IMG/VR virus record: IMGVR_UViG_3300042317_001568
Location: 124,001-188,000 of that record
Direction: 5' to 3' (one strand)
Length of the DNA: 64,000 nucleotides
Below are positions 16,747-31,126 of this stretch, piece by piece. The stretch's first letter is position 1; each line of letters starts with the position of its first letter. A model generated the notes under the pieces. That model worked only from the letters and a program-made list of their open reading frames with translations, did no database searches and was not told where the DNA came from. The translations under genes were made by a program, and so were the position numbers.

Positions 16747-16748
16747 CC

Positions 16749-17926: not shown

Positions 17927-17931
17927 TTCGC

Positions 17932-18288
17932 ATGGCATCGCGGCCCACAGCACGCGCTACGGCGCATGGTTGGAACGACTCGTGGTGGGATTACGTCAAG
18001 CACGGGCAGCCAATGGACCCCGCAAAAAAAGCGGAGTTAGCGGCTAAAAAGAAAGCGCGTCAGCAGGAAACAGCAAACAAGGGTTTGCGGTTTATTATTT
18101 TGAAAAGCTCGCGGTATGTAGACGAAACCGATCTCTCGGTTACTGACGCGTACACCGGACCTACTTGTCGCCGCGCTAAAGTTGAGCCGGGGCAGGTCTA
18201 TACGTCGTTTGAGACGGCGCAAGCAGACGCTGACAAACTGTCAAAATTCAACTCTGCAGGATTTGAAGTGCACCCTCTTTCATCATGA
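17932..18288 (+). CDS. hypothetical protein
   Basis: AGGAG SD; 118 aa. Confidence 0.6.
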   Translation: MASRPTARATAHGWNDSWWDYVKHGQPMDPAKKAELAAKKKARQQETANKGLRFIILKSSRYVDETDLSVTDAYTGPTCRRAKVEPGQVYTSFETAQADADKLSKFNSAGFEVHPLSS

Positions 18289-18306
18289 TCTATAGCGACT
18301 ACACGG

Positions 18307-19416
18307 ATGTTTTACGCGGCAATCGAATCTCGCCTCCGCATGGCGAAAATGCGGCAAAATCGTATTGCCCGCGTGATGTCCCGGGCGCGACACATATTCG
18401 CGCTGGTGACGACATTCGGGTTAGCGCGCAATCGTGAGAAACGCGCGGTACGCCGACGATGGCGTAAGTTTCAAGGCTGGTGGTTGCATACGCTAGAGCA
18501 GCTTTGCACTCACGGATTATGGTCACCGGTTTCAGACCAGTGTTTTTCTAATCTCACTGCAAACGAAGCCAACCGATTTGATTTCGCGTTTGGCTTGTGC
18601 ACGCGGTGTCTGCCTTTATGTGTGAAGTGGGTAGAGTCTCGCGCGTCTTTTGTGCGGCGTCTTCGTCGCAAAATAAACGCGCAGATTATTCCCTGCCGTA
18701 AGACGCATTTCTGTCCATCTTGTTTTGCGTCTTTGTCGGCCAACCAGTATCGAAAATTTAAAGAGGTCGTAAACGATCTTATTCAGAGTCACGCCGTCGT
18801 TAGCGTTACGGCGCACGTCTCTGCTGTGTTTATTCCAGCGACCACACTGTACGATAAAAATCTGCAGCAGGACGAGTATTTACGGGAAAACATTGGAGCT
18901 CTTCGGCAGGCTATAACGCACGCAAAAAATTTGCGGCAAAAGCTGCACAAGCGGTTTCAGCGCAACACGCTTGGGTCGTTCTGGCGGATCATCGCTGTTC
19001 CAATGCCAGACGGCTGGCGTTTGGAAACTCGATGGGTGGTGCTGCATCGAAGCGATACGCCCCCACCGATTGAAGACACTGACGACAGTCACGTACGGTT
19101 TCACAAAACTGTGGCTTTAGAGTACTCAACGTGGGCCGAGCGGTTTTCTAGCGGCGACCTTGATGACACGCTGGCCGACGTGCTGGCTCGATTTGCTAAA
19201 TATCCAGTATCGCTCATTCGCGGCGATGTAGACCTTATTGCTGCGTGGTTAAACGCTAGCGCAAGAACAAAAGTTTTGCTCGGAACTGGTCTTTTAAAAC
19301 AAGCCGGCCCAAGCCTTATTGGTCACTACAAAAAACGCGACAAGCGCACACGCCGAGCTCGCGCGTACAGGAGAAGTCGTCTTGCCGGGCAAACGACGCA
19401 AACGCGCAACACGTAA
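18307..19416 (+). CDS. basic protein with C-x4-CPxC motif, possibly a degenerate Rep-like protein
   Basis: PCRKTHFCPSC; no intact HUH motif. Confidence 0.45.
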   Translation: MFYAAIESRLRMAKMRQNRIARVMSRARHIFALVTTFGLARNREKRAVRRRWRKFQGWWLHTLEQLCTHGLWSPVSDQCFSNLTANEANRFDFAFGLCTRCLPLCVKWVESRASFVRRLRRKINAQIIPCRKTHFCPSCFASLSANQYRKFKEVVNDLIQSHAVVSVTAHVSAVFIPATTLYDKNLQQDEYLRENIGALRQAITHAKNLRQKLHKRFQRNTLGSFWRIIAVPMPDGWRLETRWVVLHRSDTPPPIEDTDDSHVRFHKTVALEYSTWAERFSSGDLDDTLADVLARFAKYPVSLIRGDVDLIAAWLNASARTKVLLGTGLLKQAGPSLIGHYKKRDKRTRRARAYRRSRLAGQTTQTRNT

Positions 19417-20518
19417 TGGTGTTGCTCCGGGTATTGCGTTTGACCCTGCGCCTACCACGCAGCGGTTACGCTACTTGTGTGAGTTCTTGTTTGCCGGCGA
19501 CCCCTATGCCATGGCGCAGGCGCTTGGCGTTTGTTATAGGCACTTCTATACGGTTTACGACGGCCGGTGTAAATTGTCGATTCGCATGGCGGGGCAAGTT
19601 ATTGCCGCGCTGAACGTTCGGGCCGAGTGGCTGCTAAACGGAACAGGGCCAATGCTAGCGACAGACATTTCTGAAATTCGATTTCATCTTGCGCCGACTA
19701 TACGTAGTTCGTTTCCGTTAAAATCGGCTGATCGGTTTATCCGGCCGGAAACTGTTTGCGCGGCGCCGTCTGATAATGCTGCGCCAGAAGCTGTGGGTGA
19801 TTACTCGGAAGCCGCCACCGCGCTTTTTAAGGCGCGTGTGCAGAATGCTCCGGTACTCCTGTTGGTCGGCGGCACCGCGGCACCAGCTGGCCCGGCAATG
19901 GCTTCTTTTATCCGTAGTGGTTATGCCGGCGCTGCTGGCTTTACCCTGCAGGCGGCAAAACAAGATGCCTCGCCGGCACTAGCCGCAGGTGAATTAGACT
20001 TAAACAACATAGCTAGGTTTGCTGCCGCCGTTGGCCGAGGATACGGGGAGGCTATTGCGTCAAAGATTCATAGTCCCCGTTCTCCGTGGCCCAGAGAGCA
20101 CAGCGCCTTGGCTGCGGCATACGACAACTCGCTGCCGATAGCTGTACAGGTTGAGCTTGGTGAAATACCCGAGCATTTTGGCCCAGTGCACGCCGGCGCA
20201 GAGTTAGGCGCCGCTGTTGGTTCTGCAGCGTATGTGGACCAGCTTGTGTTGGCTGACTATTTGCAAAAAATTGACTGCCATGACGCGGCAGTCATTATTT
20301 GCGTTGGAGAAGCACATCGTTGGCTGACTGCCTTATCGCGGCAGTCAACCTTACTTCGGAAAATCATCTTGGCAGACGCTGACACATCGGCGGCGCAGTG
20401 TTTTTCGCAAAAAGCGGCGCAGGTGATCTACATTGACAATAGTGCTTGTGTGTTTTTTCGTGAATTGCTTGTGGCGGTTCAGGCGGCTCAAGCCGCCGGT
20501 GAAATGACTGGAGAATAG
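19319..20518 (+). CDS. XRE-type HTH fused to a degenerate deoxyhypusine-synthase-like domain; start uncertain
   Basis: RLRYL...AMAQALGV...LNVRAEWLLNGTGPM; then GYGEAI, SALAAAY...LPIAVQVELG, GAAVGSAAYVD. Confidence 0.55.
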   Translation: MVTTKNATSAHAELARTGEVVLPGKRRKRATRNGVAPGIAFDPAPTTQRLRYLCEFLFAGDPYAMAQALGVCYRHFYTVYDGRCKLSIRMAGQVIAALNVRAEWLLNGTGPMLATDISEIRFHLAPTIRSSFPLKSADRFIRPETVCAAPSDNAAPEAVGDYSEAATALFKARVQNAPVLLLVGGTAAPAGPAMASFIRSGYAGAAGFTLQAAKQDASPALAAGELDLNNIARFAAAVGRGYGEAIASKIHSPRSPWPREHSALAAAYDNSLPIAVQVELGEIPEHFGPVHAGAELGAAVGSAAYVDQLVLADYLQKIDCHDAAVIICVGEAHRWLTALSRQSTLLRKIILADADTSAAQCFSQKAAQVIYIDNSACVFFRELLVAVQAAQAAGEMTGE

Positions 20519-20519
20519 A

Positions 20520-21734
20520 GTGGCAGATAGTGTTTTTGAACAAGTCGATCAGTTTGTGCTGCACTCTTCCGCGCCGACAGTTCCGAAAGAGGACGTATTG
20601 TCGGCGCAAGAGCAGCTCACCTTTGTGACGTCGCTTATTGACTTCTGGAAGCAGGTACCTAAAGCCTGTCGCGCTCAGTTGCAACGCGTGTCTGAAAGTA
20701 TTTCGCAGCTTGATTTCCCACTAATTGGTGGAGATTTTTACTCGGCATTGTTTTCTAGCGAGCGGATTGCCAGCGCAGAGAAGAAATACGGTTTGTCGCA
20801 GGAAGAGGTTTTTGCTGCGTTGCTGTACGCGCTGCAGCTGTTTTTGATGCGGTCTGACCCAAAGACGGCGGTTATCGATGACTTGTGGAAACTGGTTGTA
20901 ATTGCGCTGGAGAAAGCGGCCAACAGAAACAAGCCGACCAACGAGCCCGAGCTGTACAACGAGCGCATGGTGTCTCGGGTATTTAAACACCGCAAACAAA
21001 CCATTGCGTCGTTGGGCGCCGTCAACGCCGAGTATGTGTATTTTGAAACCCCGGTAGCCGACGACAAACATGGGCCAGAGCTCCGCGGACTGGCATTTAT
21101 TTCTCGCACTGATTTGCCAAAAGCAAAGCAGCCTGCTTTCGCCAATAAGCTTTTTGTGTTGCTCGAAACCGGCGAGCACATTATTGTCGAGACAAATGCT
21201 TCAAACCTAAGCCGCCACGCCGATCCCGAAGCCTACGAGAAAATTCCGGCGAGCTTGTTGCTGCAGGCGGTAATTGCGGCGCCACTGATGGTTCGCATGG
21301 GCGTTATTACTCGGTCTCAGGCTGATACTATCGCAGAAACGTTTGGTGAGTTTATTGCGCCTGTAACAGCAGAGATTATTGCTGACACGGCGTCCATGCT
21401 GCCGATTGAACAGGTGTTTGTGCGGGCGCACGCCAACACGGCTTATGCCGGGCACGTTACTGGACCCAACGGAGCCGAGGTGCGGTTTCCCGCACTAAGC
21501 ATCGACGACACCAATCAGCTCGCTTTTGTGTTGCGCGCGCGGATTACGCCGAGCAGCTATTACTTGGTATCTAGTCTGGTGGCGGGCGGAGACGACTCTC
21601 CCGATGTACCCATCATGAAAAATGACTACCCAAGACAGCTGTCTCCATACGGCGTATACTTATTTCCAACGTCGCAGGATTTGTTCGTGTTGTCGGCTTT
21701 TCCGCACAACTTTATTCTTGGCCCCGAGGGATAG
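20520..21734 (+). CDS. hypothetical protein
   Basis: 404-aa ORF, GGAG SD with GTG start. Confidence 0.7.
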   Translation: MADSVFEQVDQFVLHSSAPTVPKEDVLSAQEQLTFVTSLIDFWKQVPKACRAQLQRVSESISQLDFPLIGGDFYSALFSSERIASAEKKYGLSQEEVFAALLYALQLFLMRSDPKTAVIDDLWKLVVIALEKAANRNKPTNEPELYNERMVSRVFKHRKQTIASLGAVNAEYVYFETPVADDKHGPELRGLAFISRTDLPKAKQPAFANKLFVLLETGEHIIVETNASNLSRHADPEAYEKIPASLLLQAVIAAPLMVRMGVITRSQADTIAETFGEFIAPVTAEIIADTASMLPIEQVFVRAHANTAYAGHVTGPNGAEVRFPALSIDDTNQLAFVLRARITPSSYYLVSSLVAGGDDSPDVPIMKNDYPRQLSPYGVYLFPTSQDLFVLSAFPHNFILGPEG

Positions 21735-21739
21735 GCGGC

Positions 21740-22354
21740 ATGTATTTGTTCATGGACACGGAAACCGGCGGGCTAACGCCAGACCGTAGTTTGCTTACGG
21801 CGTCGTTTATTCCGGTGGACAAGAATTTCGGCATTATGCCGCTTACGTATTTCGATCCGCTAATGCAGCGGACAGAGCACGCTGAGTGCGGCCTGTATCT
21901 GGCTATTAAGCCGGAGACGTACGTCATCGACCAAGAGGCGTTAGCCGTTAACAAAATCAACATCGCCGAGCACGAGCGCGACGCGGTACCGGTCGACATG
22001 GCTCGCCGGCTGATCAACAGTTTTGTAGAAGCCGCGCGCAAAGAATCCGGCAAAAAGTATCTGGTCCCCGCCGGTCACAATGTGGCGTTTGACGTGCAGT
22101 TTTTGAAAGCGCAAATCTTCACTGAAGAAGAGTGGGACCGGTTGTTCACGTACCCGTTTCTGGACACAGCGTCTGCTGCGCGGTTCCTCAACGCAGCTGG
22201 GGCTATTGACGGCGGGTACTCGCTGACCACGATGCGGTCCAAGTTTTTGAGCGCCGATTTTGGAGTTGCGCACAACGCAGAAGTGGATAATCTGACGACT
22301 ATCGCGTTGGCTCAAAAGCTCACTGAATTCGTTCAACGGCGCGCCAGCGCCTAA
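21740..22354 (+). CDS. DEDDh 3'-5' exonuclease (DnaQ-like)
   Basis: FMDTETGGL (ExoI), GHNVAFD (ExoII), HNAEVD (ExoIII). Confidence 0.9.
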   Translation: MYLFMDTETGGLTPDRSLLTASFIPVDKNFGIMPLTYFDPLMQRTEHAECGLYLAIKPETYVIDQEALAVNKINIAEHERDAVPVDMARRLINSFVEAARKESGKKYLVPAGHNVAFDVQFLKAQIFTEEEWDRLFTYPFLDTASAARFLNAAGAIDGGYSLTTMRSKFLSADFGVAHNAEVDNLTTIALAQKLTEFVQRRASA

Positions 22355-22458
22355 ATCGCGTCAAACTTCCGCGATCTGGCACCCTAGTCATGAGTGGGTC
22401 ATAACCGTGAAGCGTACAGCAAAGAAAGGTGATACTCCAATTTGTGTGTGCGAAGCCG

Positions 22459-22467
22459 TGGTATAAA
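22459..22467 (+). promoter_or_regulatory. extended -10 promoter element upstream of the tRNA
   Basis: TGGTATAAA about 20 nt before the tRNA 5' end. Confidence 0.4.
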
Positions 22468-22487
22468 AGGACGTTACCGCGCGAAGC

Positions 22488-22558
22488 TGCCCGATGGTGT
22501 AACGGTAGCACAAGAGATTTTGGCTCTCTTAGTCTAGGTTCGAATCCTAGTCGGGCAT
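22488..22558 (+). tRNA. tRNA-Gln (anticodon TTG), CCA not encoded
   Basis: acceptor TGCCCGA/TCGGGCA, anticodon stem AGAGA/TCTCT with loop TT-TTG-GC, T-arm CTAGG-TTCGAAT-CCTAG. Confidence 0.93.
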
Positions 22559-22571
22559 TCGGAGGTTTTAA

Positions 22572-23120
22572 ATGAGTACTAGCGTAAATCTTTGGGATCA
22601 GCTAGACGTACCGCACAAAGGTTGGATTTTTTTAGACGTTATAGATACGGAAACAGCAGAAGCAACCTGCGAGATGTGCGGAAACGAGCGTATTCGTTAT
22701 GTACATATGATGGCGCACGCAGATTACGCCGCACGACTCAGTGTTGGTTGTGTGTGCGCCGAAAAAATGGCAGATGATTATGTTAACCCGCGTCGTCGCG
22801 AACGTAAATTGCGCAATGCTGCTGCAAAACGCATTCGCGACAAAAAACGTGAACTTGAAAATAAAGAAACGCGGCGACAACAAATACTTGACGCGGTGTG
22901 GCAAGAATCAAAAAACGGCAATCCGTATTTGCGCATAAATCTATACTACAGCGACAGTAGCCACATCTGGACGCGAAAAATTCACGCTGTAGTAGTCAAA
23001 TCAAAATTTACAGCTTCTTGGGCATTCTCTGTCGATGGCGTGTTTTCATCGTATAAGCACGCCAGCATAAACGCGGCGATGGCGGCGGCAAAACAAGAAA
23101 TTTTGCGCAAATTTGTTTAG
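22572..23120 (+). CDS. zinc-binding hypothetical protein (VPHKGW...CEMC..IRYVH...VGCVCA)
   Basis: GGAGG SD; AT-richer than its surroundings; stop codon lies within the tRNA-end repeat. Confidence 0.75.
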   Translation: MSTSVNLWDQLDVPHKGWIFLDVIDTETAEATCEMCGNERIRYVHMMAHADYAARLSVGCVCAEKMADDYVNPRRRERKLRNAAAKRIRDKKRELENKETRRQQILDAVWQESKNGNPYLRINLYYSDSSHIWTRKIHAVVVKSKFTASWAFSVDGVFSSYKHASINAAMAAAKQEILRKFV

Positions 23121-23142
23121 GTTCGAATCCTAGTCGGGCATT
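23118..23142 (+). repeat. 25-bp perfect direct repeat of the tRNA-Gln 3' end (att-like)
   Basis: TAGGTTCGAATCCTAGTCGGGCATT at 22535-22559 and 23118-23142. Confidence 0.9.
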
Positions 23143-23157
23143 GGTTTAATTTTACTT

Positions 23158-23490
23158 TTGGAGAACAACATGATTAAAAACAATTTGGTGTACCAGTCTT
23201 ATCGTTCGGCTAAGCAAAAGACAGAGCGGCGTTTAGTTGGATTGCCGCTGCGTAAGCATTTAATCAAAAACATTTGTCGCGTCATGAAGGAGTATGCTCC
23301 GCTTGTTGGCGTAACTCAAAAAGAAATTGCTGCCGACATTAAGGCTATTCAGGCGTGGAAACTTGATGCGGTGACAGATTGGTACTTCCTATACGACGCG
23401 CTTGGGTCTTCTTCTCGCCTTGATATTGAACTGCTTGATTTTTGTTCTTATGCGCGGTCGCGCTGGTGGTACAACCAACTTTCGCGGTAG
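23158..23490 (+). CDS. hypothetical protein (probable start ATG 23170)
   Basis: GGAG SD before ATG 23170. Confidence 0.6.
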   Translation: MENNMIKNNLVYQSYRSAKQKTERRLVGLPLRKHLIKNICRVMKEYAPLVGVTQKEIAADIKAIQAWKLDAVTDWYFLYDALGSSSRLDIELLDFCSYARSRWWYNQLSR

Positions 23491-23506
23491 AGTATTTTTT
23501 GGTTTT

Positions 23507-23648
23507 TGATCGGCTCCTCAGTGACAGCGACTAAGGCGGCGCTTTGGTGCGCCGGTACCCAACAGCCACGTGCTTGACCTAACCCGACGGGGTGAACTAC
23601 ACAGCATGCCGGTGAGGTACATAGCGGGTGCAATTCCCGCCCGATCAA
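23507..23648 (+). ncRNA. tRNA-like structured RNA with enlarged variable arm
   Basis: TGATCGG/CCGATCA acceptor-like stem, GCGGG-TGCAATT-CCCGC T-arm, internal hairpins; intergenic. Confidence 0.55.
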
Positions 23649-23699
23649 TTCGGAGGCTGACGTTAGAGTTACAAAAATTTGTTTAATAAGGACGCAGTA

Positions 23700-24008
23700 A
23701 TGACATTCAACGAACTGGAAGAGAAGGTACTGCAGTGGGCGATAGACCGAAAGATCATCCCCAACAGCAATCCGACAGCGCAACTCATGAAGACGATGTC
23801 GGAGTTGGGCGAGTTAGCCGACGCCACGCTCAAGGACAATCGACACGGCATTGTGGACGGCGTTGGCGACGTGCTGGTGACACTGATTCTGTACTGCAAA
23901 TTACAAGAAATCAGCGTAGCGGCATGTTTAGGCCGTGCCTACGATGAGATTAAAGATAGAAAAGGCACTTTAACACCAGAAGGTATTTTTGTGAAGGAGA
24001 CAGCATGA
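23700..24008 (+). CDS. MazG-like NTP pyrophosphatase
   Basis: WAIDRKI...QLMKTMSELGELA...DGVGDVLVTL...AYDEIKDRKG. Confidence 0.88.
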   Translation: MTFNELEEKVLQWAIDRKIIPNSNPTAQLMKTMSELGELADATLKDNRHGIVDGVGDVLVTLILYCKLQEISVAACLGRAYDEIKDRKGTLTPEGIFVKETA

Positions 24009-24283
24009 TCGATCCAAATAAAGTAATAAATGACTGCGAGCAAGCCGATCATATTATGCAGGATCAACGGGCCGAAATTGATCGGCTCAAGGAAGCCATC
24101 CGCCGCCTCGCTGACCAAGACGCCACGCTCTCGGTGTGCAACGGCAACGTGATTGTGACGATGGACGCCACTCTCACCGACGAGGAGCGGGAGGCGGTGG
24201 AGTGGGCGGAAGAACTCGCTGGAAACTGCGAAGAGTTTGATCGCGTGAACACGCTGCGCAACCTACTAGAGAGAACGAAGTGA
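24005..24283 (+). CDS. LTDEERE-family protein (paralog 1)
   Basis: TLTDEEREAV...TLRNLLER. Confidence 0.7.
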   Translation: MIDPNKVINDCEQADHIMQDQRAEIDRLKEAIRRLADQDATLSVCNGNVIVTMDATLTDEEREAVEWAEELAGNCEEFDRVNTLRNLLERTK

Positions 24284-24543
24284 CTAAAACACAATGTCAA
24301 GTTCCGTCGCAAATAAACGTGACGCTCACAGACGAGCAGCGAGAGTCATTGCGGGCGTCCTTGTCAGGCGGTGCAGGAGGCCCGCTGGTTCATCCACCGC
24401 AGCCCGCGCTCACCGCCGATGAGTGGGAAGCCGTCTGGCTGGCAATCGGAATGTTCGCGGAAGGGCCGGAGCATATCAAGCGACATGAGGAAATGGCCGA
24501 CACGCTGCGCAACCTGCTGGAGCGGCTAGGAGGTGCAAAGTGA
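24280..24543 (+). CDS. LTDEERE-family protein (paralog 2)
   Basis: TLTDEQRE / LTADEWEA...TLRNLLERLGG. Confidence 0.7.
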   Translation: MTKTQCQVPSQINVTLTDEQRESLRASLSGGAGGPLVHPPQPALTADEWEAVWLAIGMFAEGPEHIKRHEEMADTLRNLLERLGGAK

Positions 24544-24848
24544 GCGACACAAACAAGCCTGTGGCATGGGCAGTGACGCCGAACGGCCGCGACGAGGAGA
24601 TTGACTGCGAGTTCATCTACCCTGACGCCGCGACTGCCGGAGACGTTGCGCTGGGTTGCGATGGCGTGGTGTTGCCGCTCTTTCGTCCGAAGCCACCGCC
24701 TGCCACCACGCTCACCGACGAGGAGCGGGAGGCGTTGAATCGCGGAATCGACGCGTTGTACGGCGTGGAGGACGTATCGGATGGTGCGTGCCGCAGAGAC
24801 GATGCCGCAGCGAGGACGCTCCTCGCGTTACTGGAACGACTGAAGTGA
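24540..24848 (+). CDS. LTDEERE-family protein (paralog 3)
   Basis: PVAWAV...PLF...TLTDEEREAL...TLLALLERLK; stop within attC-like site A. Confidence 0.7.
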   Translation: MSDTNKPVAWAVTPNGRDEEIDCEFIYPDAATAGDVALGCDGVVLPLFRPKPPPATTLTDEEREALNRGIDALYGVEDVSDGACRRDDAAARTLLALLERLK

Positions 24849-24895
24849 GAACGATGCGATCTGCGGCGCAGTCCCCTCAATCGCGTGGTTCTGGA
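24845..24895 (-). repeat. attC-like site A (inner stem degenerate)
   Basis: GTGAGAAC-gat-GCGAT-CTGCGG...ATCGC-gtg-GTTCTGGA. Confidence 0.6.
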
Positions 24896-24906
24896 GACAC
24901 ACACAC

Positions 24907-25074
24907 ATGACAATCACTCAAATAATCGGTGCTGCACTGATCGCATCCCCCTTTGCGGGCGTTGCGGTGTTGTGCCACATGCACGGCGGCTGGCCCGCCG
25001 TTGCTGTAGTGTTTGGGGCGAGCGGAGCCGTTGTTGCTGTTATCGCACTTGGGTGCCGACTTCTGGTTCCATAA
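24907..25074 (+). CDS. 55-aa two-helix membrane protein (cassette 1; below ORF-track cutoff)
   Basis: MTITQIIGAALIASPFAGVAVLCHMHGGWPAVAVVFGASGAVVAVIALGCRLLVP; GGAG SD; TAA inside the TAAC box of site B. Confidence 0.7.
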   Translation: MTITQIIGAALIASPFAGVAVLCHMHGGWPAVAVVFGASGAVVAVIALGCRLLVP

Positions 25075-25119
25075 CGCTTGCGATCTGCGGCTCGTCCGCA
25101 GCATCGCGTGGTTCTCTCA
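25068..25119 (-). repeat. attC-like site B
   Basis: TAAC-gctt-GCGAT-CTGCGG-ctcg-t-CCGCAG-c-ATCGC-gtg-GTT. Confidence 0.8.
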
Positions 25120-25137
25120 GGGAGTCTGGTGCGATCA

Positions 25138-25326
25138 ATGAGATGGTTCATCTGCAAAAACCACAGCGGCGAGAAGTTTGTGAAACGCTGGTACGCGATC
25201 TGGCCGGTGACGGTCAAGGGTGAGACGCGATGGTTGGAGTGGGTCGCCGTGGAATACCGGAGGGTGTTCTACGTCGGCAAGGATCACATTCAGCACGGGG
25301 AGCAGGCGGTTCGGTTTGTGAGTTGA
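25138..25326 (+). CDS. hypothetical protein (cassette 2)
   Basis: MRWFICK...WPVTVKGETRWLE; TGA within the left box of site C. Confidence 0.65.
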   Translation: MRWFICKNHSGEKFVKRWYAIWPVTVKGETRWLEWVAVEYRRVFYVGKDHIQHGEQAVRFVS

Positions 25327-25415
25327 GAGAACACGCAGGATCAGGAGCGGCGAACAATGAGCGATGACAACACGCAGGACGGTGCCGAGCCGTCTCCTGC
25401 ATCCGCTGGTTATCC
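25324..25415 (-). repeat. attC-like site C (loop contains the ATG of the next gene)
   Basis: GAAC-acgca-GGAT-CAGGAG-CGGC...GCCG-t-CTCCTG-c-ATCC-gctg-GTT. Confidence 0.8.
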
Positions 25416-25590
25416 GCAGCAAGTCGCCTGCGACGCTTGCGGTGGTTCTGGAAAGTTCTGCGTAGGGGAGACATTGGTCAGCCGCGACATGGCGATAGAC
25501 GCAGAGTGTCCGTCGCTTGAGGGCACGCACTACGAGTACGAGTTCGCGCGGTGCCCGGCTTGCGGCGGCGACGGTTGGGTTCTTGGATAA
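25357..25590 (+). CDS. DnaJ-type CxxCxGxG zinc-finger protein (cassette 3)
   Basis: CDACGGSG and CPACGGDG; starts inside site C; TAA within the TAAC of site D. Confidence 0.7.
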   Translation: MSDDNTQDGAEPSPASAGYPQQVACDACGGSGKFCVGETLVSRDMAIDAECPSLEGTHYEYEFARCPACGGDGWVLG

Positions 25591-25644
25591 CGACAAGGAT
25601 AAGCGGCGGCTTCGCCGTCCGCTTCATCCGCTGGTTCTGCGTCA
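25585..25644 (-). repeat. attC-like site D
   Basis: TAAC-gacaa-GGAT-AAGCGG-CGGC-ttc-GCCG-t-CCGCTT-c-ATCC-gctg-GTT. Confidence 0.85.
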
Positions 25645-25657
25645 AACGAGGTGAGAC

Positions 25658-25903
25658 ATGAGAACGCTTGAAGACGAAGAAGACCCCTTCATTCCGACTC
25701 CGTCAGAGGCTCGTCGCTTCGGGCGGCTGGACAAGATGCCGGAACATAAGCGACTGAAGGCGACAGTGCGGATGTTTTTGGATGCGATCAGGTGTGTGCC
25801 GATGCGGGCGATTGACTGCGATCAACTTCTGGTAAGTGAACTGTTGAACCGTCTGCACGATGAAACAAAACCAAACCGCAAGAAGAAGCGTCGCGCAAAG
25901 TGA
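25658..25903 (+). CDS. hypothetical protein (cassette 4)
   Basis: GAGGTG SD; TGA at the left edge of site E. Confidence 0.65.
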   Translation: MRTLEDEEDPFIPTPSEARRFGRLDKMPEHKRLKATVRMFLDAIRCVPMRAIDCDQLLVSELLNRLHDETKPNRKKKRRAK

Positions 25904-25994
25904 CGCAGAACGCCAGAGATGAATGGCTGCGAACACAGGAGCATGACACATGACAGACGAAAATGAGCAGTCCATTCCATCGCGTGGTTCTCAC
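25901..25994 (-). repeat. attC-like site E (loop contains SD and ATG of the next gene)
   Basis: GAAC-gccaga-GAT-GAATGG-CTGC...GCAG-t-CCATTC-c-ATC-gcgtg-GTT. Confidence 0.8.
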
Positions 25995-26261
25995 GGGGAG
26001 CCGTGCGCGTGGGCTGTGGTGCTTGCTGACGGCCAGCGAATCTACGATGTCTATGGCATCGAAGAAGAGGCCAAGGCGATTGACGAGGCAGTTACTGGGA
26101 ATCACGGCATCGTCCCGCTCTACCGCTCTCCCACGCTCACCGACGAGGAACGCGAGGCGCTTGCTGAAGCGATTGGAGCCTACAACGACAACGACGACGA
26201 CGAGGAATGTGCTAAGATTGCGGCCACGCTTCACGGCTTACTGAAGCGGCTGGGCGGTTAA
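25950..26261 (+). CDS. LTDEERE-family protein (paralog 4)
   Basis: EPCAWAV...VPLYR.PTLTDEEREAL...ATLHGLLKRLGG; starts inside site E. Confidence 0.7.
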   Translation: MTDENEQSIPSRGSHGEPCAWAVVLADGQRIYDVYGIEEEAKAIDEAVTGNHGIVPLYRSPTLTDEEREALAEAIGAYNDNDDDEECAKIAATLHGLLKRLGG

Positions 26262-26297
26262 TGTCAAGTTTTGTTGCAAAAAAACTAGGAGCAACTA

Positions 26298-26540
26298 ATG
26301 ACCGACAAAGAGAAAAACCGCAGTTACATAACAGCATGTGTTTCGTGCGGCGGGCGTATTCAGGTCACAAACGGCGTCAGTGGCAGGCACGAATGCTCTA
26401 AACGGCATGACGCCGCGCAAAAAGCTGCCGACACGCGGGCCTACGATGACGTGCCAACGCGGCGAAAACAATCCCTACTGACGCGGCTTTCAACCGGGTT
26501 TAAAATGCTGGCCGAAAAAGAAGACGACGACCCCGAGTGA
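26298..26540 (+). CDS. small zinc-ribbon-like protein
   Basis: AGGAG SD; CVSC...HEC. Confidence 0.6.
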   Translation: MTDKEKNRSYITACVSCGGRIQVTNGVSGRHECSKRHDAAQKAADTRAYDDVPTRRKQSLLTRLSTGFKMLAEKEDDDPE

Positions 26541-26612
26541 CCTGTCGCAAAAACGGAAAAATAGCGACAAGTTTTGGCAATATGTCGCCGGTAACAACAT
26601 CAGGAGGATAAC

Positions 26613-26813
26613 GTGACCGACAAAGAAATTGAGCAAAAGTTGAGTTTGTGGGGAGCCGGCCGGCCAAAGACCGCCGAGGGGCAGTTAGCCTTGCAAGCCG
26701 CAGACGTTATTTCCAAACTTCGTGCCGATCTGAAATATGAGCGCGCCCGCGCTGATTTGAATGACCACACTGAAGAATTAAGAGAACTGTACGCAAAAAA
26801 TAAGGCGCAATAA
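26613..26813 (+). CDS. hypothetical protein
   Basis: AGGAGG SD with GTG start. Confidence 0.55.
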   Translation: MTDKEIEQKLSLWGAGRPKTAEGQLALQAADVISKLRADLKYERARADLNDHTEELRELYAKNKAQ

Positions 26814-27211
26814 TGAGTCCAGAACTTGAACAACAACTGATCAAAAAATACCCTGCGCTATTTCAAGATACAGACAAACCGGCAACGGAAAGTCTGATGT
26901 GCTTTGGCTGCGAGTGCCGTGACGGCTGGTACAACATTATTGAGAGCGCGTGCGGAATCATTTCTCACTACATCGAGCAACGGCGAAAAACAAACGACCT
27001 TTCGTCATTTCGCTGGATGCAGATTAAAGAAAAATTCGGCACGCTGCGGCTGTATCACTCCGGCGACGCAGACGAATACATTTTGGGTGTAACTGACATG
27101 GCGGAAGACCTTTCCGGTTCTGTTTGTGAAGTGTGCGGAAATGTTGGCCAGCTGTGCGGTACTGGGTGGTATCAAACACTCTGCCCTGAGCACGAAAAGC
27201 TTCTTCCGTGA
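26813..27211 (+). CDS. conserved phage protein (GW..II...QIKEKFGTLR.Y...CEVCG...GW..TLC..H)
   Basis: widespread phage family motif. Confidence 0.8.
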   Translation: MSPELEQQLIKKYPALFQDTDKPATESLMCFGCECRDGWYNIIESACGIISHYIEQRRKTNDLSSFRWMQIKEKFGTLRLYHSGDADEYILGVTDMAEDLSGSVCEVCGNVGQLCGTGWYQTLCPEHEKLLP

Positions 27212-27259
27212 TGGCGGTTATCGGCAAAAGCTGGTAGAATATGCCCGAGGAATTTTGCC

Positions 27260-27841
27260 GTGTTTAGTGCCGCACACATGTCAAAAGCCGAGTTGGATTT
27301 TATTCGTTTGTACGTGCAGATCACGCACAAACGCTTTGCGGCATTGCAGGCCGTGTTGAGCTTGGCGCATCCAGACAATCTGGCGCTTTTGGACATGGTG
27401 CACGCTACAGAATTGGTAGCGCACATGGAGCGGCTACAAAACGATTTTGACGGGCAGATACAGCAACTCCAGTTAAAACACAATATTCCGTCTAAACGTT
27501 TGCCGCCTGCCCCGCCAACAAATGAGCAACTGGCCGACATTGTTGTCATGTCATTTTTCAAAGTTGTCGGCGTAATGAACGCGACAAACGGTTTGATGGC
27601 AAAGACAAAACAAAACGGGTGGTTTAGCGGTAAACCCAAAGAGTGGAATGATCTTTTCGACAAGCTGGCGACCGACTTACCCGAAAACCAAATGGATTCG
27701 GCGCTGTCGCCTTATCTAAAATCTGTCGCCAAGTTTTTTCCAAAATATTATCCCCCCGGGAACTGGTCAAAGTTGTTTCCGCCTCCGCAGCAAGAATTTT
27801 ACGAAGACGACGAATACGACGAAGAGTGGGACAACGAATAG
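27260..27841 (+). CDS. hypothetical protein
   Basis: 193-aa ORF with acidic tail. Confidence 0.6.
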   Translation: MFSAAHMSKAELDFIRLYVQITHKRFAALQAVLSLAHPDNLALLDMVHATELVAHMERLQNDFDGQIQQLQLKHNIPSKRLPPAPPTNEQLADIVVMSFFKVVGVMNATNGLMAKTKQNGWFSGKPKEWNDLFDKLATDLPENQMDSALSPYLKSVAKFFPKYYPPGNWSKLFPPPQQEFYEDDEYDEEWDNE

Positions 27842-29031
27842 GAGGGCCTATGCGGCCGTTGTTTGTTTTTTGTGCTGATTTGCATTTGGAAGATGGCGCT
27901 TGGACTTCTCGGATAAACATCTACGGCGACGCGTATTACAGTTTTAAGCAGATCGTAGACCACTGCATTGAGCACAAACTGCCGCTCATACTTGGCGGCG
28001 ACGTGCTGGAAAAGAAAAGCAATGCGGCGCGTCCAATTGCAAAACTGTGCGCCGAGCTGACCCGCATGCAGGACGCCAAACTCCCGGTGTACTACATTCA
28101 GGGTAATCACGAATATGATCGCTATGCGCCGTGGCTAAGCGTGCACCCGTGGCCGACGCACATGCATAACCTCACAGTGGTGTTCGACAACGTCAGCGTG
28201 CACGGCATCGATTGGTTACCAAAGGGAGAAATTCAAAAAGCGCTCAAAGATGTTCCGGCGACTACAGCCGTACTTGTCACGCATCAGGTGTGGCAAGATT
28301 TTATGGGCACCGTTGGGCGAACCGAATGCGATTTGTCGGAGGTGCACTACGCACACACAGTCCTCGCCGGTGACTTTCACGTTACAAAAGTAGCTGAAGG
28401 TACAAACGCGCAAGGAAAACCGATTCGCATGTTGTCTCCGGGTTCAACTGCTATGCAAGACATCGGCGAAGAACCCGAGAAGTTTTTCTTCGTTATTTGT
28501 GTTGACGAAGCGGGCAAAATTGTTTTCGCCCCGCATCGGCTGCAGACACGCAAATTTTTGAGTTATGTTGTTAAAACAGCGGAAGAGCTGGACGAACTGT
28601 GCGCCGGCAAACTGGCAAACGCTGTTGACCGGGTACTACAGGCGGCCCGGCTTTACGTTCCGCCAGAACTAGCAAAACCACTGGTTCGGGTGAAATTCAA
28701 CAAAAACCTTCCGGACGCTTATCTTCGAATCACGACGGCCGGCGCTGACATAGCGCATTTGTTTTGCGACGCCATTGCGGATCGTGACGATGAGAACAAA
28801 GACCGCCCCGCCCGCCCGCGAGATGAAACAAAAAACGACTTACTGCACGCAATCGCCGAGCTGCTTGGCGACGACACAGATGAATATCGCTTCGCGCAAG
28901 AAATACTTGCGGCTACAAATCCAAAGCGGCTCGTTGAGTCGCACCTACACGAATATGTGAAAGGGGCAGGCAATGCAGCTATTACGGCTGGAAGTTCAGA
29001 ACTGGGTGCACCACCGGAAACGGGTTTGTGA
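27826..29031 (+). CDS. sbcD: SbcD/Mre11-like metallophosphoesterase nuclease (probable start ATG 27850)
   Basis: ADLHL, GGD, QGNHE, THQ, GDFH, PGS motifs; adjacent to an SMC ATPase. Confidence 0.88.
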   Translation: MGQRIGGPMRPLFVFCADLHLEDGAWTSRINIYGDAYYSFKQIVDHCIEHKLPLILGGDVLEKKSNAARPIAKLCAELTRMQDAKLPVYYIQGNHEYDRYAPWLSVHPWPTHMHNLTVVFDNVSVHGIDWLPKGEIQKALKDVPATTAVLVTHQVWQDFMGTVGRTECDLSEVHYAHTVLAGDFHVTKVAEGTNAQGKPIRMLSPGSTAMQDIGEEPEKFFFVICVDEAGKIVFAPHRLQTRKFLSYVVKTAEELDELCAGKLANAVDRVLQAARLYVPPELAKPLVRVKFNKNLPDAYLRITTAGADIAHLFCDAIADRDDENKDRPARPRDETKNDLLHAIAELLGDDTDEYRFAQEILAATNPKRLVESHLHEYVKGAGNAAITAGSSELGAPPETGL

Positions 29032-31126
29032 GTTTACCCGCGGCCTTGTCGCCATCCTTGGCGAAAATGGTTCCGGCAAAAGCAGCTTGTTCGGCGCGGT
29101 CAGCTGGCTGCTTACTGGAGAAAACCCCAACTACGGCACTAAAGCCGAAAACATCTCTCAATACGCCGAAAACGACGAGCCGGCTTTTGCGCGACTTGAG
29201 TTTGAGCACAACGGCCATATCGCCGTAGTAACTCGCTGGCTTCGGCCCGAAAAAGAAACAGCCACGATGCTCGTCGACGACGTCGAGGTGGCCAGAGGCG
29301 ACAAAAGCGTCACCGCGGCTATTGAGCAGTTGCTTGGAATTGACGCCAAGTTTATTTCGCGGTTTATCATTGTTGGTCAGCTAGACATTTTTTCGTTTAT
29401 TGACCAACGGCAGAGCGAAGTCGACACTTTTTTTCAGCACCTCTTCGGCACAGCAAAAGCTCAAAAATGCGCCGCTGCCGTAGGCGACGTTCTTCTGACA
29501 GCAAAGCCACCCGAGATATTGCGCACGTCGGCGGAGCTGCAGTTGGTAAGAGACGCGTTGGCTACAAAAATAAAAGACGCTCAGGACCGCGTCGACGCTA
29601 TTCCGACAATTGACGCATTTTTGAAAATGCAGCAGGTAGATCAGGCTATTATCGAGCAATGGCGTTTACGTGAAAAACTTGGCGCAGAGCTTTCAGCACT
29701 TGAGCAGCGGGAAAAAGAGTACGCAAAAGAGCTGCAAATAGATGACGACCAGTTGACTCAGTACGCTGCTGATCTCGCCGCGCTTACCGAGTCCGCTGAC
29801 ACTCAAGACGCAGACTACACATCGGCGAAGGTTGCTTTAGCGCATTGGGGCAACTACAAGACTATTGCTAGCCAACGCCGACAGATTGAAACACAGCGCG
29901 CGGGAATCGCTACTGCTCGAAACGAGAATATACGCCCGGAACCAGTGACGCAGTCGGTGATTGACATGGCTGCGCAAAAGTATGCGCATTTGCATCAAGA
30001 GATCACGCGGCTGCGAAATTTTGTTAGCGCTTTTTCAAAGGCCGGCACAGCCGAATGTCCGACGTGTCATACGCCGACCGCGAACTTACAGGCGCAACTC
30101 GATGAGTCGAAAAAGTTGTTGCCGATTCTGCAAGCACAGGCCGTAGACGCGCAAGAAGCCTTGACAGAGCTGCGAAAAGCCGCAGACGGTTATGCAAAGT
30201 GGGAAAAGACAGATCACGAATTATCGGTACGGGAACAGGCGCTTCAAACATCACTAGCGCAACTTACAGCCGTCTCCCCCCCGACAGATGACGAAACGAT
30301 TCTGCAGCAAACTGTAATAGATTACGAGGAGTTGCAGGCGGCAAAAATCGGGCTTAATGAGCTGCTTCAAAAGCTTCGTGAGCACCGCGCCCAGCTTGCC
30401 GGAGTCGCTACCACAATCGCGGAACGGAAAAGCGAAATAGATCAATCTGTCGCGGTTATTTCTACGACTCAGGCTGACGCACATTTGGCTTCTTTACGGT
30501 TGGAAAAACTCAAAGAGCGGTGTGCTTTGCGGCAGTCACTAGAGCGCGAATTTGAAGAACTTCGTTTTTCTGATCGACAATTAGCCGAGCAGCAGGCAAA
30601 TAGTCAAAAACTGGAGGAGGAGGCAGCCCGGCTTAAAAACTGGACAGAGCAAGCGACGCGCGTTCGGGAGGCTTTCAAGAGTGCCCCGCGGCTTGTGGCT
30701 ACAAGAAATCTGCAGCGGCTGGAGACAGCCATTAACGAGCTGCTGCAAATTTTTAGCGTGAACTTTTTAGTCCGCGTCGCCACCGACGGTACCCCCACGT
30801 TTGTGGCCGAATTTTATGACGGGCGAAAACAAGTTGCGCAGCGGTTGTCCGTCGGGCAGAAAACAGTTTTGGCGCTTGCGTTTCGCGTAGCGTGTAATGC
30901 AATGTTTGCAGAAGAAATTGGTTTGCTTGCGCTCGACGAGCCTACCGCTGCTTTGGATTCTGTGCGTATTCAAGCGCTCGCTCCGGTTCTGGAAAAGCTA
31001 CGAGAACTATCGACGGCAAAAGGGTTACAATGTCTATTGGTGACGCACGCGTCTTCTTTGTCGCATTTGTTTGAGTCGACGATAGAACTCGAAGCACCGG
31101 AAACCCGCCATGTCAAAAAATTATGA
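28973..31126 (+). CDS. sbcC: SbcC/Rad50-like SMC ATPase
   Basis: GENGSGKS Walker A, coiled coils, CPTC zinc hook, LSVGQ signature, LDEPT Walker B, VTH. Confidence 0.92.
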   Translation: MQLLRLEVQNWVHHRKRVCEFTRGLVAILGENGSGKSSLFGAVSWLLTGENPNYGTKAENISQYAENDEPAFARLEFEHNGHIAVVTRWLRPEKETATMLVDDVEVARGDKSVTAAIEQLLGIDAKFISRFIIVGQLDIFSFIDQRQSEVDTFFQHLFGTAKAQKCAAAVGDVLLTAKPPEILRTSAELQLVRDALATKIKDAQDRVDAIPTIDAFLKMQQVDQAIIEQWRLREKLGAELSALEQREKEYAKELQIDDDQLTQYAADLAALTESADTQDADYTSAKVALAHWGNYKTIASQRRQIETQRAGIATARNENIRPEPVTQSVIDMAAQKYAHLHQEITRLRNFVSAFSKAGTAECPTCHTPTANLQAQLDESKKLLPILQAQAVDAQEALTELRKAADGYAKWEKTDHELSVREQALQTSLAQLTAVSPPTDDETILQQTVIDYEELQAAKIGLNELLQKLREHRAQLAGVATTIAERKSEIDQSVAVISTTQADAHLASLRLEKLKERCALRQSLEREFEELRFSDRQLAEQQANSQKLEEEAARLKNWTEQATRVREAFKSAPRLVATRNLQRLETAINELLQIFSVNFLVRVATDGTPTFVAEFYDGRKQVAQRLSVGQKTVLALAFRVACNAMFAEEIGLLALDEPTAALDSVRIQALAPVLEKLRELSTAKGLQCLLVTHASSLSHLFESTIELEAPETRHVKKL

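Follow-up and report, generated by a model that had tools for sequence, protein, structure and literature searches.

Gene cassettes headed by attC-like hairpins in uncultured phages

Five small early genes of an uncultured ~205-kb lake phage are each preceded by an imperfect palindrome, and the question raised by this locus is whether these palindromes act as integron-type recombination sites. We analyzed a 64,000-bp stretch of the phage (the window; positions 124,001 to 188,000 of IMG/VR record IMGVR_UViG_3300042317_001568). The full ~205-kb contigs include this record and NCBI JBFDSG010009547.1. The first-pass annotation had described five palindromes (A-E) of common layout with exactly one short ORF between neighbours, and had read them as an integron-like cassette array whose genes are inverted relative to attC-like sites. 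The observation holds: all five palindromes are present, four of them with the geometry of an attC bottom strand and the fifth in a decayed form. The interpretation is supported in part: hundreds of hairpin-plus-gene units are shared among unrelated phages, which points to an integron-like gene-exchange system, but no recombinase was shown to act on the sites.

An array of attC-like hairpins on the coding strand

Sites B, C, D and E share one layout on the + strand: (A/T)(G/T)AAC, 6 nt, GAT, a 6-bp stem, an optional 4-bp stem, the loop, the optional 4 bp, an unpaired T, 6 bp, an unpaired C, ATC, 5 nt and GTT(C/A)T. Site A is degenerate (Table 1). The stop codons of the upstream genes overlap the AAC or lie 1-5 nt before it (TGAGAAC, TAAC, TGAGAGAAC, TAAC, TGACGCAGAAC). 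This arrangement exceeds chance: the right-arm pattern occurs 5 times in the window against 0.31 expected. A covariance model built mainly from sites of other phages (46 training sequences, site C among them) recovered all five sites on the + strand, scored about 8 bits on the - strand, and found nothing else significant in 64 kb.

To compare the sites with genuine attC, we formulated a strict bottom-strand grammar from the attC literature (AAC-N6-L box-6 bp-loop-T-6 bp-N-L box-N5-GTT; PMC5027507, PMC7439510). The grammar finds only B-E in the window, all on the + strand, and none in 100 shuffled windows. In 50 kb of plasmid R100 it finds only the bona fide aadA1 attC, there on the strand antisense to aadA1. 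A looser grammar with flexible spacers and G:T pairs allowed was unspecific, with 30-60 hits per 50-64 kb, and was discarded. The AAC and GTT triplets are present at all five sites. The 6-nt and 5-nt unpaired spacers of B-E are identical in length to those of the R100 aadA1 attC, whereas A has 5 nt on both arms. The extrahelical bases of B-E, C at position 16 and T at position 23, are separated by a 6-bp stem and fall as in attC_aadA7, with T distal. The geometry and the inverted gene polarity are therefore real: in R100 the bottom-strand grammar lies opposite to the gene, while in the window it lies on the coding strand, 5' of the gene.

Other attC properties do not fit. The extended R-box consensus RYYYAAC/GTTRRRY (PMC5027507) is not matched: the boxes are GTGAGAAC (A), CCATAAC (B), AGAGAAC (C), GGATAAC (D) and GCAGAAC (E), paired with GTTCTGG, GTTCTCT, GTTATCC, GTTCTGC and GTTCTCA, while the R100 control has ATCTAAC/GTTAGAC. 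The proximal extrahelical base, usually G in attC, is C in B-E and A in site A. The sites were not scored with the IntegronFinder or HattCI attC models; the first-pass annotation had proposed a run of IntegronFinder or the attC covariance model. A search of positions 20000-30000 against Rfam brought only tRNA-Gln above threshold, the best hit over a site being 17.7 bits at E=9.3.

Two points of the first-pass annotation need correction. It had described structure conserved without sequence, but the right arm is also well conserved in sequence (CATCSSSTGGTTMT), so the conservation is not purely structural. In addition, in C and E the Shine-Dalgarno sequence and ATG lie within the hairpin, and the right arm is translated (S-x-x-S-x-G-S/Y).

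Table 1. Features of the array and its surroundings (window coordinates; bits are covariance model scores)
Position	Strand	Feature	Description	Supporting observations
24005..26261	+	GC-rich island	Holds the paralogues and the array; 58.7% GC at 24-26 kb against about 49-53% in the flanks	Array-bearing phage contigs average 62.5% GC, so the block was probably imported
24005..24848	+	Three tandem paralogues	24005-24283, 24280-24543 and 24540-24848; same small-protein family as cassette 5; no hairpins between them	The third ends in ...AAGTGAGAAC, like cassette bodies in other phages
24845..24895	+	Site A	Decayed; AAC 24850-24852, GTT 24888-24890; 5-nt left spacer, left half of the 6-bp stem missing, bulge A instead of C	17 bits, E=0.022
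24907..25074	+	Cassette 1 ORF	55 aa, hydrophobic; stop codon TAA overlaps the AAC of site B	No Pfam hit; called as a gene in JGI/NCBI assemblies
25068..25119	+	Site B	Short loop; AAC 25073, GAT-CTGCGG-CTCG-T-CCGCAG-C-ATC, GTT 25111; wholly intergenic	38 bits; passes the strict grammar
25138..25326	+	Cassette 2 ORF	62 aa, function unknown	
25324..25415	+	Site C	Long loop; AAC 25330, stem CAGGAG/CTCCTG, 4-bp CGGC/GCCG, GTT 25409; GGAG Shine-Dalgarno sequence in the stem, ATG at 25357 in the loop, right arm coding	94 bits (in the training set); passes the strict grammar; near-identical cores in many other phage contigs
25357..25590	+	Cassette 3 ORF	77 aa; weak DnaJ-type CxxCxGxG zinc-finger match; starts inside the loop of site C	PF00684, E=1e-5, below the curated cut-off
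25585..25644	+	Site D	Medium loop; AAC 25589, AAGCGG/CCGCTT, CGGC-TTC-GCCG, GTT 25634	55 bits; passes the strict grammar; belongs to the cassette 99% identical to contig L255
25658..25903	+	Cassette 4 ORF	81 aa	Identical protein encoded in an unrelated phage contig, next to a DNA methyltransferase and a beta clamp
25901..25994	+	Site E	Long loop; AAC 25909, GAATGG/CCATTC, CTGC/GCAG, GTT 25987; Shine-Dalgarno sequence and ATG at 25950 in the loop, right arm encodes S-I-P-S-R-G-S	80 bits (not in the training set); passes the strict grammar
25950..26261	+	Cassette 5 ORF	103 aa; TLTDEEREAL...LLxRL paralogue family; N-terminal extension encoded by site E	In other phages the same gene body follows a different hairpin type

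A family of hairpin-gene units in phage contigs

The right-arm pattern was found in at least 120 stretches of viral contigs. In 100 of these loci we detected 252 full sites, all on one strand within a locus and on the coding strand, 5' of the gene, in arrays of up to 14 with one ORF per interval; IMGVR_UViG_3300045999_007667 is an example of an array-rich contig. Features of the left arm that were not part of the search pattern are conserved: among 136 hits with an exact 6-nt stem complement upstream, GAT precedes the stem in 131 and AAC lies exactly 6 nt before it in 122. The 4-bp stem extension is perfectly paired in 102 of 108. The base before the 6-bp stem is T in 234 of 242 sites, and the proximal extrahelical base is C in 253 of 256. 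The stems covary strongly: 96.7% of cells are paired, with 104 double-sided changes; 0 of 500 shuffles reach the observed values, and slid controls give 25-43% paired. The 6-bp stem has 20 G:T pairs against 2 A:C, which points to the + strand as the folding strand.

The family was seen only in uncultured phage contigs, including three contigs binned into MAGs (two Planctomycetota, one unclassified). Megablast and blastn of the region against 50,697 cultured-phage records found no match; the lineage is known only from metagenomes. A partial scan of bacterial genomes gave mostly single chance hits and no such family in bacterial chromosomes, so host integrons with this site type are not excluded. 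The cassettes form a large pool: 245 cassettes fall into 190 families, and single cassettes recur in otherwise different arrays. The cargo is typical accessory or anti-restriction content, with DUF551, 5-6 DNA methyltransferases and HNH endonucleases.

We then asked which neighbour the hairpin travels with. Automated calling of homology-block ends between cassettes was too noisy, and an initial comparison of sites with the same upstream gene was dominated by the conserved C-terminus of DUF551-type proteins. We therefore used classes of flank and core identity, with cassette families and stricter flanks. The core goes with the downstream gene in 30 of 52 pairs that share a downstream flank, but with the upstream gene in only 1 of 40 pairs that share an upstream flank, which is the 2.8% baseline. 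At higher resolution, window positions 25596-25911 are about 99% identical to an unrelated phage contig (L255), and the identity stops immediately after the AAC of the next site.

The same comparison bears on the possibility that the hairpins are selfish miniature palindromes (MITE-, REP- or BIME-like), inserted between genes by a transposase or a RAYT-type HUH enzyme. Their terminal inverted boxes AGAAC...GTTCT, many copies, intergenic or gene-start location and few sequence types would suit such elements. However, the replacement of a hairpin between otherwise identical flanks, which this reading would require, was looked for and found in 0 pairs. There is no target-site duplication, the core is linked to the downstream gene and often encodes its start, and no HUH enzyme or transposase gene recurred among the ten most recurrent neighbour families, the only ones annotated. 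We consider this reading very unlikely.

Homology breaks at AAC to within about 3 nt, but this junction coincides with the gene boundary, because the stop codon abuts the box, and selection for intact genes could therefore sharpen it. A second, less frequent class of junctions, at the GTT box, occurs in 10 independent groups, and the 6-nt left spacer differs in 10% of otherwise identical cassettes, including the window cassette with site D versus L255. The canonical bottom-strand-only IntI mechanism predicts neither. These observations leave undecided whether exchange takes place between A and C of the triplet.

Comparison of related phages for gain, loss or reordering of cassettes had been put forward in advance as a test of the recombination reading. 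Within this phage the array is identical in all contigs that could be compared, from 10 or more metagenomes, and gives no sign that the phage is shuffling now. Relatives found through the SbcD-like gene were either 100% identical to the window (three contigs) or too distant and without sites (two contigs), so that a direct comparison with close relatives at this locus was impossible. Across the family, on the other hand, hairpin-plus-ORF units reassort with junctions at the AAC box.

Recombination sites, RNA leaders or patches of homology

The first-pass annotation had noted that the window encodes no IntI or tyrosine recombinase, and had suggested that the phage may use a host integron integrase, or one encoded elsewhere, to gain and shuffle early genes. 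A search for the enzyme beyond the window had been named there as a check. tblastn with the integrase family found beside other arrays gave nothing significant in the 64-kb window or in the 7.6 kb beyond it; about 133 kb of the ~205-kb genome was not examined. A box-II motif regex also found nothing in the window and the first 125 loci, but it is a weak test, since it missed the atypical integrases later identified by Pfam. These integrases lie near arrays in 17 temperate-type loci, in the usual lysogeny position. They match generic XerC/D/XerA models far below their cut-offs and match PDB XerA and lambda Int better than IntI4; they are generic Xer/lambda-type enzymes, not IntI, and no site-like motif lies beside them. 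No IntI or attI was found anywhere, and on the DNA examined the array does not qualify as a complete integron, which has an adjacent intI gene (a tyrosine recombinase with the IntI-specific insertion), an attI site and a Pc promoter. Use of a host integron integrase was not tested, nor was recombination of the sites as folded single strands assayed.

The explanation that we favour, with moderate confidence, is that the five elements belong to a large, phage-borne family of attC-like recombination sites, recognised when one strand (here the + strand) folds into a hairpin presenting an AAC/GTT R box, an unpaired spacer, a GAT/ATC L box and two flipped-out bases 6 bp apart. Each hairpin and its downstream ORF would form a mobile one-gene cassette. 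A tyrosine-type recombinase supplied in trans, either host-encoded or the Xer-like integrase of the temperate phages that carry most arrays, would cut in the AAC triplet, and replication would resolve the exchange, as in integrons. Cassettes would thus be swapped between arrays and between co-infecting phages. Because the genes are flipped relative to canonical cassettes, the hairpin sits at the 5' end of each gene, and in most family members its variable loop also carries the ribosome-binding site, start codon and first ~14 codons. In this jumbo phage the array looks like an imported, currently static block, probably acquired through homologous recombination in the flanking paralogous genes. 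The geometry, the strand, the covariation, the cassette-like linkage, the junction positions and the sharing between unrelated phages are established by our comparisons, whereas folding as single-stranded DNA, cleavage between A and C and the identity of the enzyme are inferred.

A role of the hairpins in the mRNA is not excluded, although we consider it unlikely. They could be 5'-leader structures controlling translation initiation or coupling, or processing sites at which RNase III or a phage endoribonuclease separates the cistrons of a polycistronic early transcript, as at the T7 early RNase III sites, and would travel with the downstream gene simply as its leader. In agreement with this, all sites are on the transcribed strand, the excess of G:T over A:C pairs is G:U-compatible, the hairpin is linked to the downstream ORF, and in most sites the Shine-Dalgarno sequence and ATG lie inside the hairpin. 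The upstream stop codon abutting the foot of the helix suits translational coupling, and conserved bulges and internal-loop bases are typical of protein-binding RNAs. However, there is no fixed relation between hairpin and ribosome-binding site: in short-loop sites the Shine-Dalgarno sequence and ATG lie outside and downstream, in E-type sites in the open loop, and in C-type sites in the stem, where GGAG is part of the 6 bp. Cleavage on the 3' side would cut the ATG away from the ORF in the roughly 75% of sites that are long-loop. No Rfam family matches, and G:U pairs are rare, about 0.08 per site. An RNA role explains neither the exact attC numbering shared with a real attC, nor why homology between phages breaks inside 5-7-nt boxes too short for homologous recombination. 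The T7-type hairpins likewise have an asymmetric internal loop and stand between consecutive early cistrons on the transcribed strand, but here the start codon often lies inside the hairpin, the upper stem carries two fixed bulges, and the elements mark recombination junctions between genomes.

A further possibility, which we regard as less likely still, is that the elements resemble the PeSLs (promoter-early stem-loops) of T4-type phages (Arbiol et al. 2010, PMC2839356; Comeau et al. 2014, PMC4122927), conserved intergenic regulatory modules that happen to be palindromic. They would promote shuffling only as short patches of homology for general or relaxed homologous recombination, without a dedicated recombinase or single-strand folding. 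The ecology matches: both are conserved short motifs (here ~40-90 bp) flanking small accessory ORFs in hyperplastic regions, and both are associated with insertion, deletion and replacement of single genes and with exchange between phages. In the temperate-type contigs the array occupies the nin-like region between the replication genes and RusA, the window array is flanked by paralogous genes that could have mediated its import, and the right arm, CATCGCGTGGTTCT, is nearly invariant. However, PeSLs, which are thought to act through homologous recombination, consist of a strong sigma-70 promoter plus a terminator stem-loop with a T run, and a scan of positions 22000-28000 found 4 promoter-like and 6 terminator-like matches, which is background, and none on the + strand at the sites, although the host may use other promoter types. 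If crossovers fell anywhere within the 40-80-nt conserved core, the left spacer and left stem would stay linked to the upstream gene, but they are at baseline. The junctions lie inside (G)AGAAC and TGGTTCT, and the compensatory covariation and invariant bulge positions show selection on a fold, not only on sequence homology.

Clusters of attC sites without integrase and a proposed mode of phage gene exchange

The closest known systems are integron attC sites and clusters of attC sites lacking an integrase (CALINs), which are known in phages and are recombined by IntI1 (Qi et al. 2023, PMC9892861). Beyond the folded-strand geometry, the phage sites share with them a variable terminal loop (5 to ~46 nt), one site per one-gene cassette, co-oriented arrays and, with the reservations given above, the break of homology at AAC. 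The cargo is rich in DNA methyltransferases, as in the published phage CALINs, and the sites are highly homogeneous, as in sedentary chromosomal integrons. What differs is the position of the site 5' of its gene, usually containing the Shine-Dalgarno sequence, ATG and first codons, the C at the proximal extrahelical position, the R-box flanks (G)AGAAC/GTTCT(S), the GAT/ATC L box and the common second junction class. Arrays reach 14 or more sites, against 2 or more in the published phage CALINs. Another parallel is found in the folded single-strand attP of CTX-type filamentous phages, a XerCD substrate, and in the Xer-dependent pdif modules of Acinetobacter plasmids. These also involve a hairpin mimicking a two-arm core site with an unpaired central region, one strand exchange resolved by replication, and small gene modules bounded by recombinase sites, and the only recombinase family seen near the arrays is Xer-like. 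However, our sites have no 11-6-11 dif-like sequence, the phage genomes are double-stranded DNA, and each gene has one hairpin rather than a pair of inverted dif sites per module.

A more far-reaching possibility, which we put forward only tentatively, is a phage-specific, IntI-independent 'integron'. A community of freshwater phages, both temperate lambda-portal types and ~205-kb jumbo phages and possibly infecting Planctomycetota, would share a pool of hundreds of one-gene cassettes. Each hairpin would act as a recombination site for a non-IntI recombinase, for example the phages' own Xer-like integrase, and as a portable translation-start module carrying the Shine-Dalgarno sequence, ATG and a leader peptide. 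This would let phages trade early and anti-defence genes during co-infection.

Integrons are the textbook bacterial system for capturing and reshuffling single genes, and so far phages have been shown to carry only sporadic fragments of them. Our analysis points to a large, homogeneous family of attC-geometry sites that appears confined to phages, organises up to 14 accessory genes per genome and is shared between unrelated phage types. If the sites are recombined as folded strands, this would give a concrete, testable mechanism for the long-standing puzzle of how the mosaic 'moron' or nin-type regions of phage genomes exchange single genes at exact boundaries. It would also extend structure-specific recombination beyond IntI, and provide a natural example of recombination sites embedded in coding sequence, so far an engineering goal for synthetic attC sites. 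If the hairpins instead act in RNA, they are a new and very abundant phage leader motif.

Geometry of the hairpins and comparison with attC sites

Inspection of positions 24400-26500 of the window shows five imperfect palindromes, A to E, where the first-pass annotation had placed them. On the + strand, sites B, C, D and E share one layout: (A/T)(G/T)AAC, 6 nt, GAT, a 6-bp stem, an optional 4-bp stem, a loop, the 4-bp partner, an unpaired T, the 6-bp partner, an unpaired C, ATC, 5 nt and GTT(C/A)T. DNA folding recovers these stems. Site A is decayed: its left spacer is 5 nt, the left half of the 6-bp stem is missing, and the bulge is A. The left arm of site A is identical to that of site B (TGCGATCTGCGGC), while its right arm resembles that of site E, so that it looks like a hybrid or a deletion scar at the edge of the array. 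The signal is far above chance. The right-arm pattern occurs 5 times against 0.31 expected. A covariance model built from 46 long-loop sites (45 from other phages plus site C) and run without filters on all 64 kb finds only the five sites, all of them on the + strand, while the - strand of the same places scores about 8 bits. One ORF lies between neighbouring sites, and each upstream stop codon overlaps or abuts the AAC. The observation made in the first-pass annotation holds, with two corrections. The right arm is conserved in sequence as well as in structure; and in sites C and E the Shine-Dalgarno sequence and ATG lie inside the loop, so the right arm is coding.

Features of the window and of the sequences compared with it
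Sequence	Position	Strand	Feature	Covariance model score
Window	22488-22558		tRNA-Gln (anticodon TTG)
Window	24005-24848 and 25950-26261		Four paralogues of a small protein family; three in tandem without hairpins, one fused to the leader of site E
Window	24293-24318 and 26260-26285		26-nt repeat, 85% identical, directly after the stop codons of the first and the last paralogue
Window	24845-24895	+	Site A	17 bits (E=0.02)
Window	25068-25119	+	Site B	38 bits
Window	25324-25415	+	Site C	94 bits
Window	25585-25644	+	Site D	55 bits
Window	25596-25911		Segment about 99% identical to contig L255
Window	25901-25994	+	Site E	80 bits
Window; L246	59753-61399 and 61417 onward; 11665-14754 and 15116-20635		Collagen-repeat tail-fibre gene followed by very large ORFs of 1029 and 1839 aa
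Plasmid R100	13479-13530	Opposite to aadA1	aadA1 attC

In the integron literature the folded bottom strand is defined by 5'-RYYYAAC-3' (R') paired with GTTRRRY (R''), a 5-6-nt unpaired central spacer, a degenerate L box, extrahelical bases at position 16 (usually G) and 23/24 (T) separated by a 6-bp stem, and a variable terminal structure (PMC5027507, PMC7439510). Counting from the 3' end of sites B-E gives 7 (R'') + 5 (spacer) + 3 (ATC), so that C falls at position 16 and T at position 23. As a direct control, we wrote this grammar as a strict pattern with free L-box and stem sequences and applied it to both strands of 50 kb of plasmid R100 and of the window. In R100 the pattern recovers exactly one site, the aadA1 attC, on the strand opposite to the gene. 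In the window it recovers exactly B, C, D and E, on the coding strand, and in 100 block-shuffled windows it recovers none. The geometry is thus the attC geometry, and the inference in the first-pass annotation that the genes are inverted relative to normal cassette polarity is correct. The differences are the R-box flanks ((G)AGAAC/GTTCT rather than RYYYAAC/GTTRRRY), the L box (GAT/ATC) and the proximal bulge (C rather than G).

A family of sites in viral contigs

The window has no relative among cultured phages and no Rfam match. The right-arm pattern hits at least 120 stretches of IMG/VR contigs, and a structural scanner finds 252 complete sites in 100 of those loci. Within a locus all sites are always on one strand, and arrays hold up to 14 sites spaced 150-700 bp apart. 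Loop lengths fall into three classes: 5-7, 11-12 and 43-47 nt. The long class makes up about 75% of sites and carries a Shine-Dalgarno sequence, an ATG and about 10 codons, after which the right arm encodes S-x-x-S-x-G-S.

Features that were not part of the search pattern are conserved. Of 136 hits with an exact stem complement upstream, 131 are preceded by GAT, and 122 of them have AAC exactly 6 nt before the GAT. The 4-bp stem extension is perfectly paired in 102 of 108. Covariation is strong: 96.7% of cells are paired and 104 cells show changes on both sides, 0 of 500 shuffles reach the observed values, and slid controls give 25-43% paired. The 6-bp stem has 20 G:T pairs against 2 A:C, which points to the + strand as the folding strand.

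In 185,579 representative genomes the pattern gave mostly single chance hits. In this search, which was not exhaustive, real arrays appeared only on three 3-30-kb contigs of metagenome-assembled genomes, two of them binned as Planctomycetota (L215 and L227, Planctomycetota and Pirellulales contigs) and one from an unclassified bacterial bin (L217). These are probably phage contigs, and they provide no more than a hint at the host phylum. Across the loci, the recognisable part of the mostly unknown cassette cargo comprises DUF551 (17 of 124 families), five or six DNA methyltransferases, HNH endonucleases, an HTH protein and zinc ribbons, which resembles the cargo of published phage CALINs, clusters of attC sites lacking an integrase (PMC9892861). 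Many cassettes upstream of sites (in loci L016, L023, L025, L029, L042, L052, L058, L077, L079, L085 and L100) encode DUF551-type proteins ending in ...HWMPLPGPA...K*, with a conserved 3' end (CACTGGATGCCGCTCCCGGCCCCGCC...AAGTAGCCACAGAAC) joined to very different N-terminal parts.

Linkage of hairpins to neighbouring ORFs

Across loci, 245 hairpin-bounded bodies fall into 190 families, and single families recur in otherwise different arrays, sometimes reordered. We classed pairs of sites from different contigs by the identity of the upstream flank, the hairpin core and the downstream flank, using strict thresholds. In 30 pairs (11 independent groups) the upstream flank differs while core and downstream flank are the same; the left spacer is shared in 90% of these pairs and the right spacer in 100%. 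In 39 pairs (18 groups) the upstream flank is the same while core and downstream flank differ, and the spacer is shared at the baseline rate. In 22 pairs (10 groups) upstream flank and core differ while the downstream flank is the same, and the right spacer is shared at the baseline rate. Only 1 pair has the same upstream flank and core with a different downstream flank, and 0 pairs have both flanks the same and a different core. An analysis by cassette family gives the same asymmetry, 7 of 13 against 1 of 22. From this we conclude that the hairpin travels with the downstream ORF, that the universal junction is at the AAC box, that a second junction lies at the GTT box, and that the hairpin does not move on its own. 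The absence of independent hairpin mobility contradicts a MITE- or REP-like element, a reading which we consider very unlikely.

Position-by-position identity profiles show homology falling to baseline immediately after AAC, although the junction at AAC coincides with the gene boundary. The best single case involves the window cassette of site D, which matches a 3.5-kb contig from another metagenome (L255) encoding a DNA methyltransferase and a beta clamp. The identity ends exactly after the AAC of the next site, while the left 6-nt spacer differs. Within one 62-kb contig (IMGVR_UViG_3300042140_000143; loci L010, L039 and L072), the same upstream gene end plus hairpin core occurs at two places and is followed by different sequence right after GTTCTCA, which reflects either an intragenomic duplication or recombination at the right box, or terminal redundancy of the assembly.

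Junctions confined to 5-7-nt boxes argue against ordinary homologous recombination within the 40-80-nt cores. A model resembling the PeSLs (promoter-early stem-loops) and based only on homology predicts junctions spread through the core, and also fails the promoter/terminator test; we regard it as unlikely. The second junction class and the exchanged spacers are not predicted by the canonical bottom-strand-only IntI mechanism. Recombination of the folded complementary strand, which is known at low frequency for integrons (PMC5027507), would place a junction at G|TT. The main rival explanation, an RNA leader or processing hairpin, explains the strand and the linkage to the downstream gene, but it does not explain the exact attC numbering, the variable placement of the ribosome-binding site, or the junctions inside short boxes, and appears unlikely to us.

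Genomic context and interpretation

The window belongs to a ~205-kb jumbo phage, carried by independent assemblies of 205,010 and 205,038 bp and present in 10 or more lake metagenomes. It encodes a DnaQ-like exonuclease, tRNA-Gln, a MazG-like protein, SbcCD-like proteins, helicases, a family-A DNA polymerase and collagen-like tail fibres; the collagen-like family also occurs in several of the array-bearing temperate contigs. All large genes are on one strand, and cumulative GC skew rises steadily. If the skew reflects replication, the parental + strand, which carries the hairpins, would be the lagging-strand template.

The array sits in a GC-rich island (58.7% against about 50% in the flanks), and array-bearing contigs average 62.5% GC. 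It is flanked by paralogues of a small protein family with the motif TLTDEEREAL ... LL(E/K)RL(G/K) and no Pfam match, which in other phages occurs as cassette bodies. This suggests that the block was imported by homologous recombination through those genes. The 26-nt repeat (AATGTCAAGTT...AAAC) may mark the original tandem junctions into which the cassette block was inserted.

Every contig of this phage that could be compared, from 10 or more metagenomes, has the same gene order, and there is therefore no sign of current shuffling in this phage. Two diverged relatives of the jumbo phage (contigs L107 and L089) carry sites at different positions and with different content; the tRNA-Gln is about 96% conserved in L107. 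More distant relatives (L004 and L005) have no sites at this locus.

Most other arrays lie in a different phage type, which has a lambda-type portal, RusA and a beta clamp. Its array occupies the nin-like region between the replication genes and RusA, and a divergently transcribed integrase lies 5-10 kb upstream. That integrase is a distant Xer/lambda-type tyrosine recombinase: it matches PF00589 at 1e-10 and the XerC/D/XerA models far below their cut-offs, and in a profile search PDB XerA and lambda Int match better than IntI4. No site-like motif lies beside it, and it has no homologue in the window or in the 7.6 kb beyond it (contig L246); about 133 kb of the ~205-kb genome was not examined.

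The best-supported reading, which we hold with moderate confidence, is that these are attC-like, structure-specific recombination sites that define one-gene cassettes in phages. The genes are flipped, so the site is a 5' module that often also carries the translation start. While the geometry, the strand, the covariation, the linkage to the downstream ORF, the positions of the junctions and the sharing between phages are seen in the sequences themselves, the folding of single strands, cleavage within the AAC triplet and the enzyme involved are inferred; in this view the recombinase acts in trans and is unidentified. The interpretation given in the first-pass annotation is supported in part.

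Both attC sites and CALINs in phages are already known. What is new is a large, homogeneous family of sites seen essentially only in phage contigs, inverted gene polarity with start codons embedded in the variable loop, a C16 bulge and different R-box flanks, and sharing between jumbo and temperate phages, while no IntI was found anywhere in the sequences examined. These arrays could become a new kind of system if a non-IntI recombinase proves responsible.
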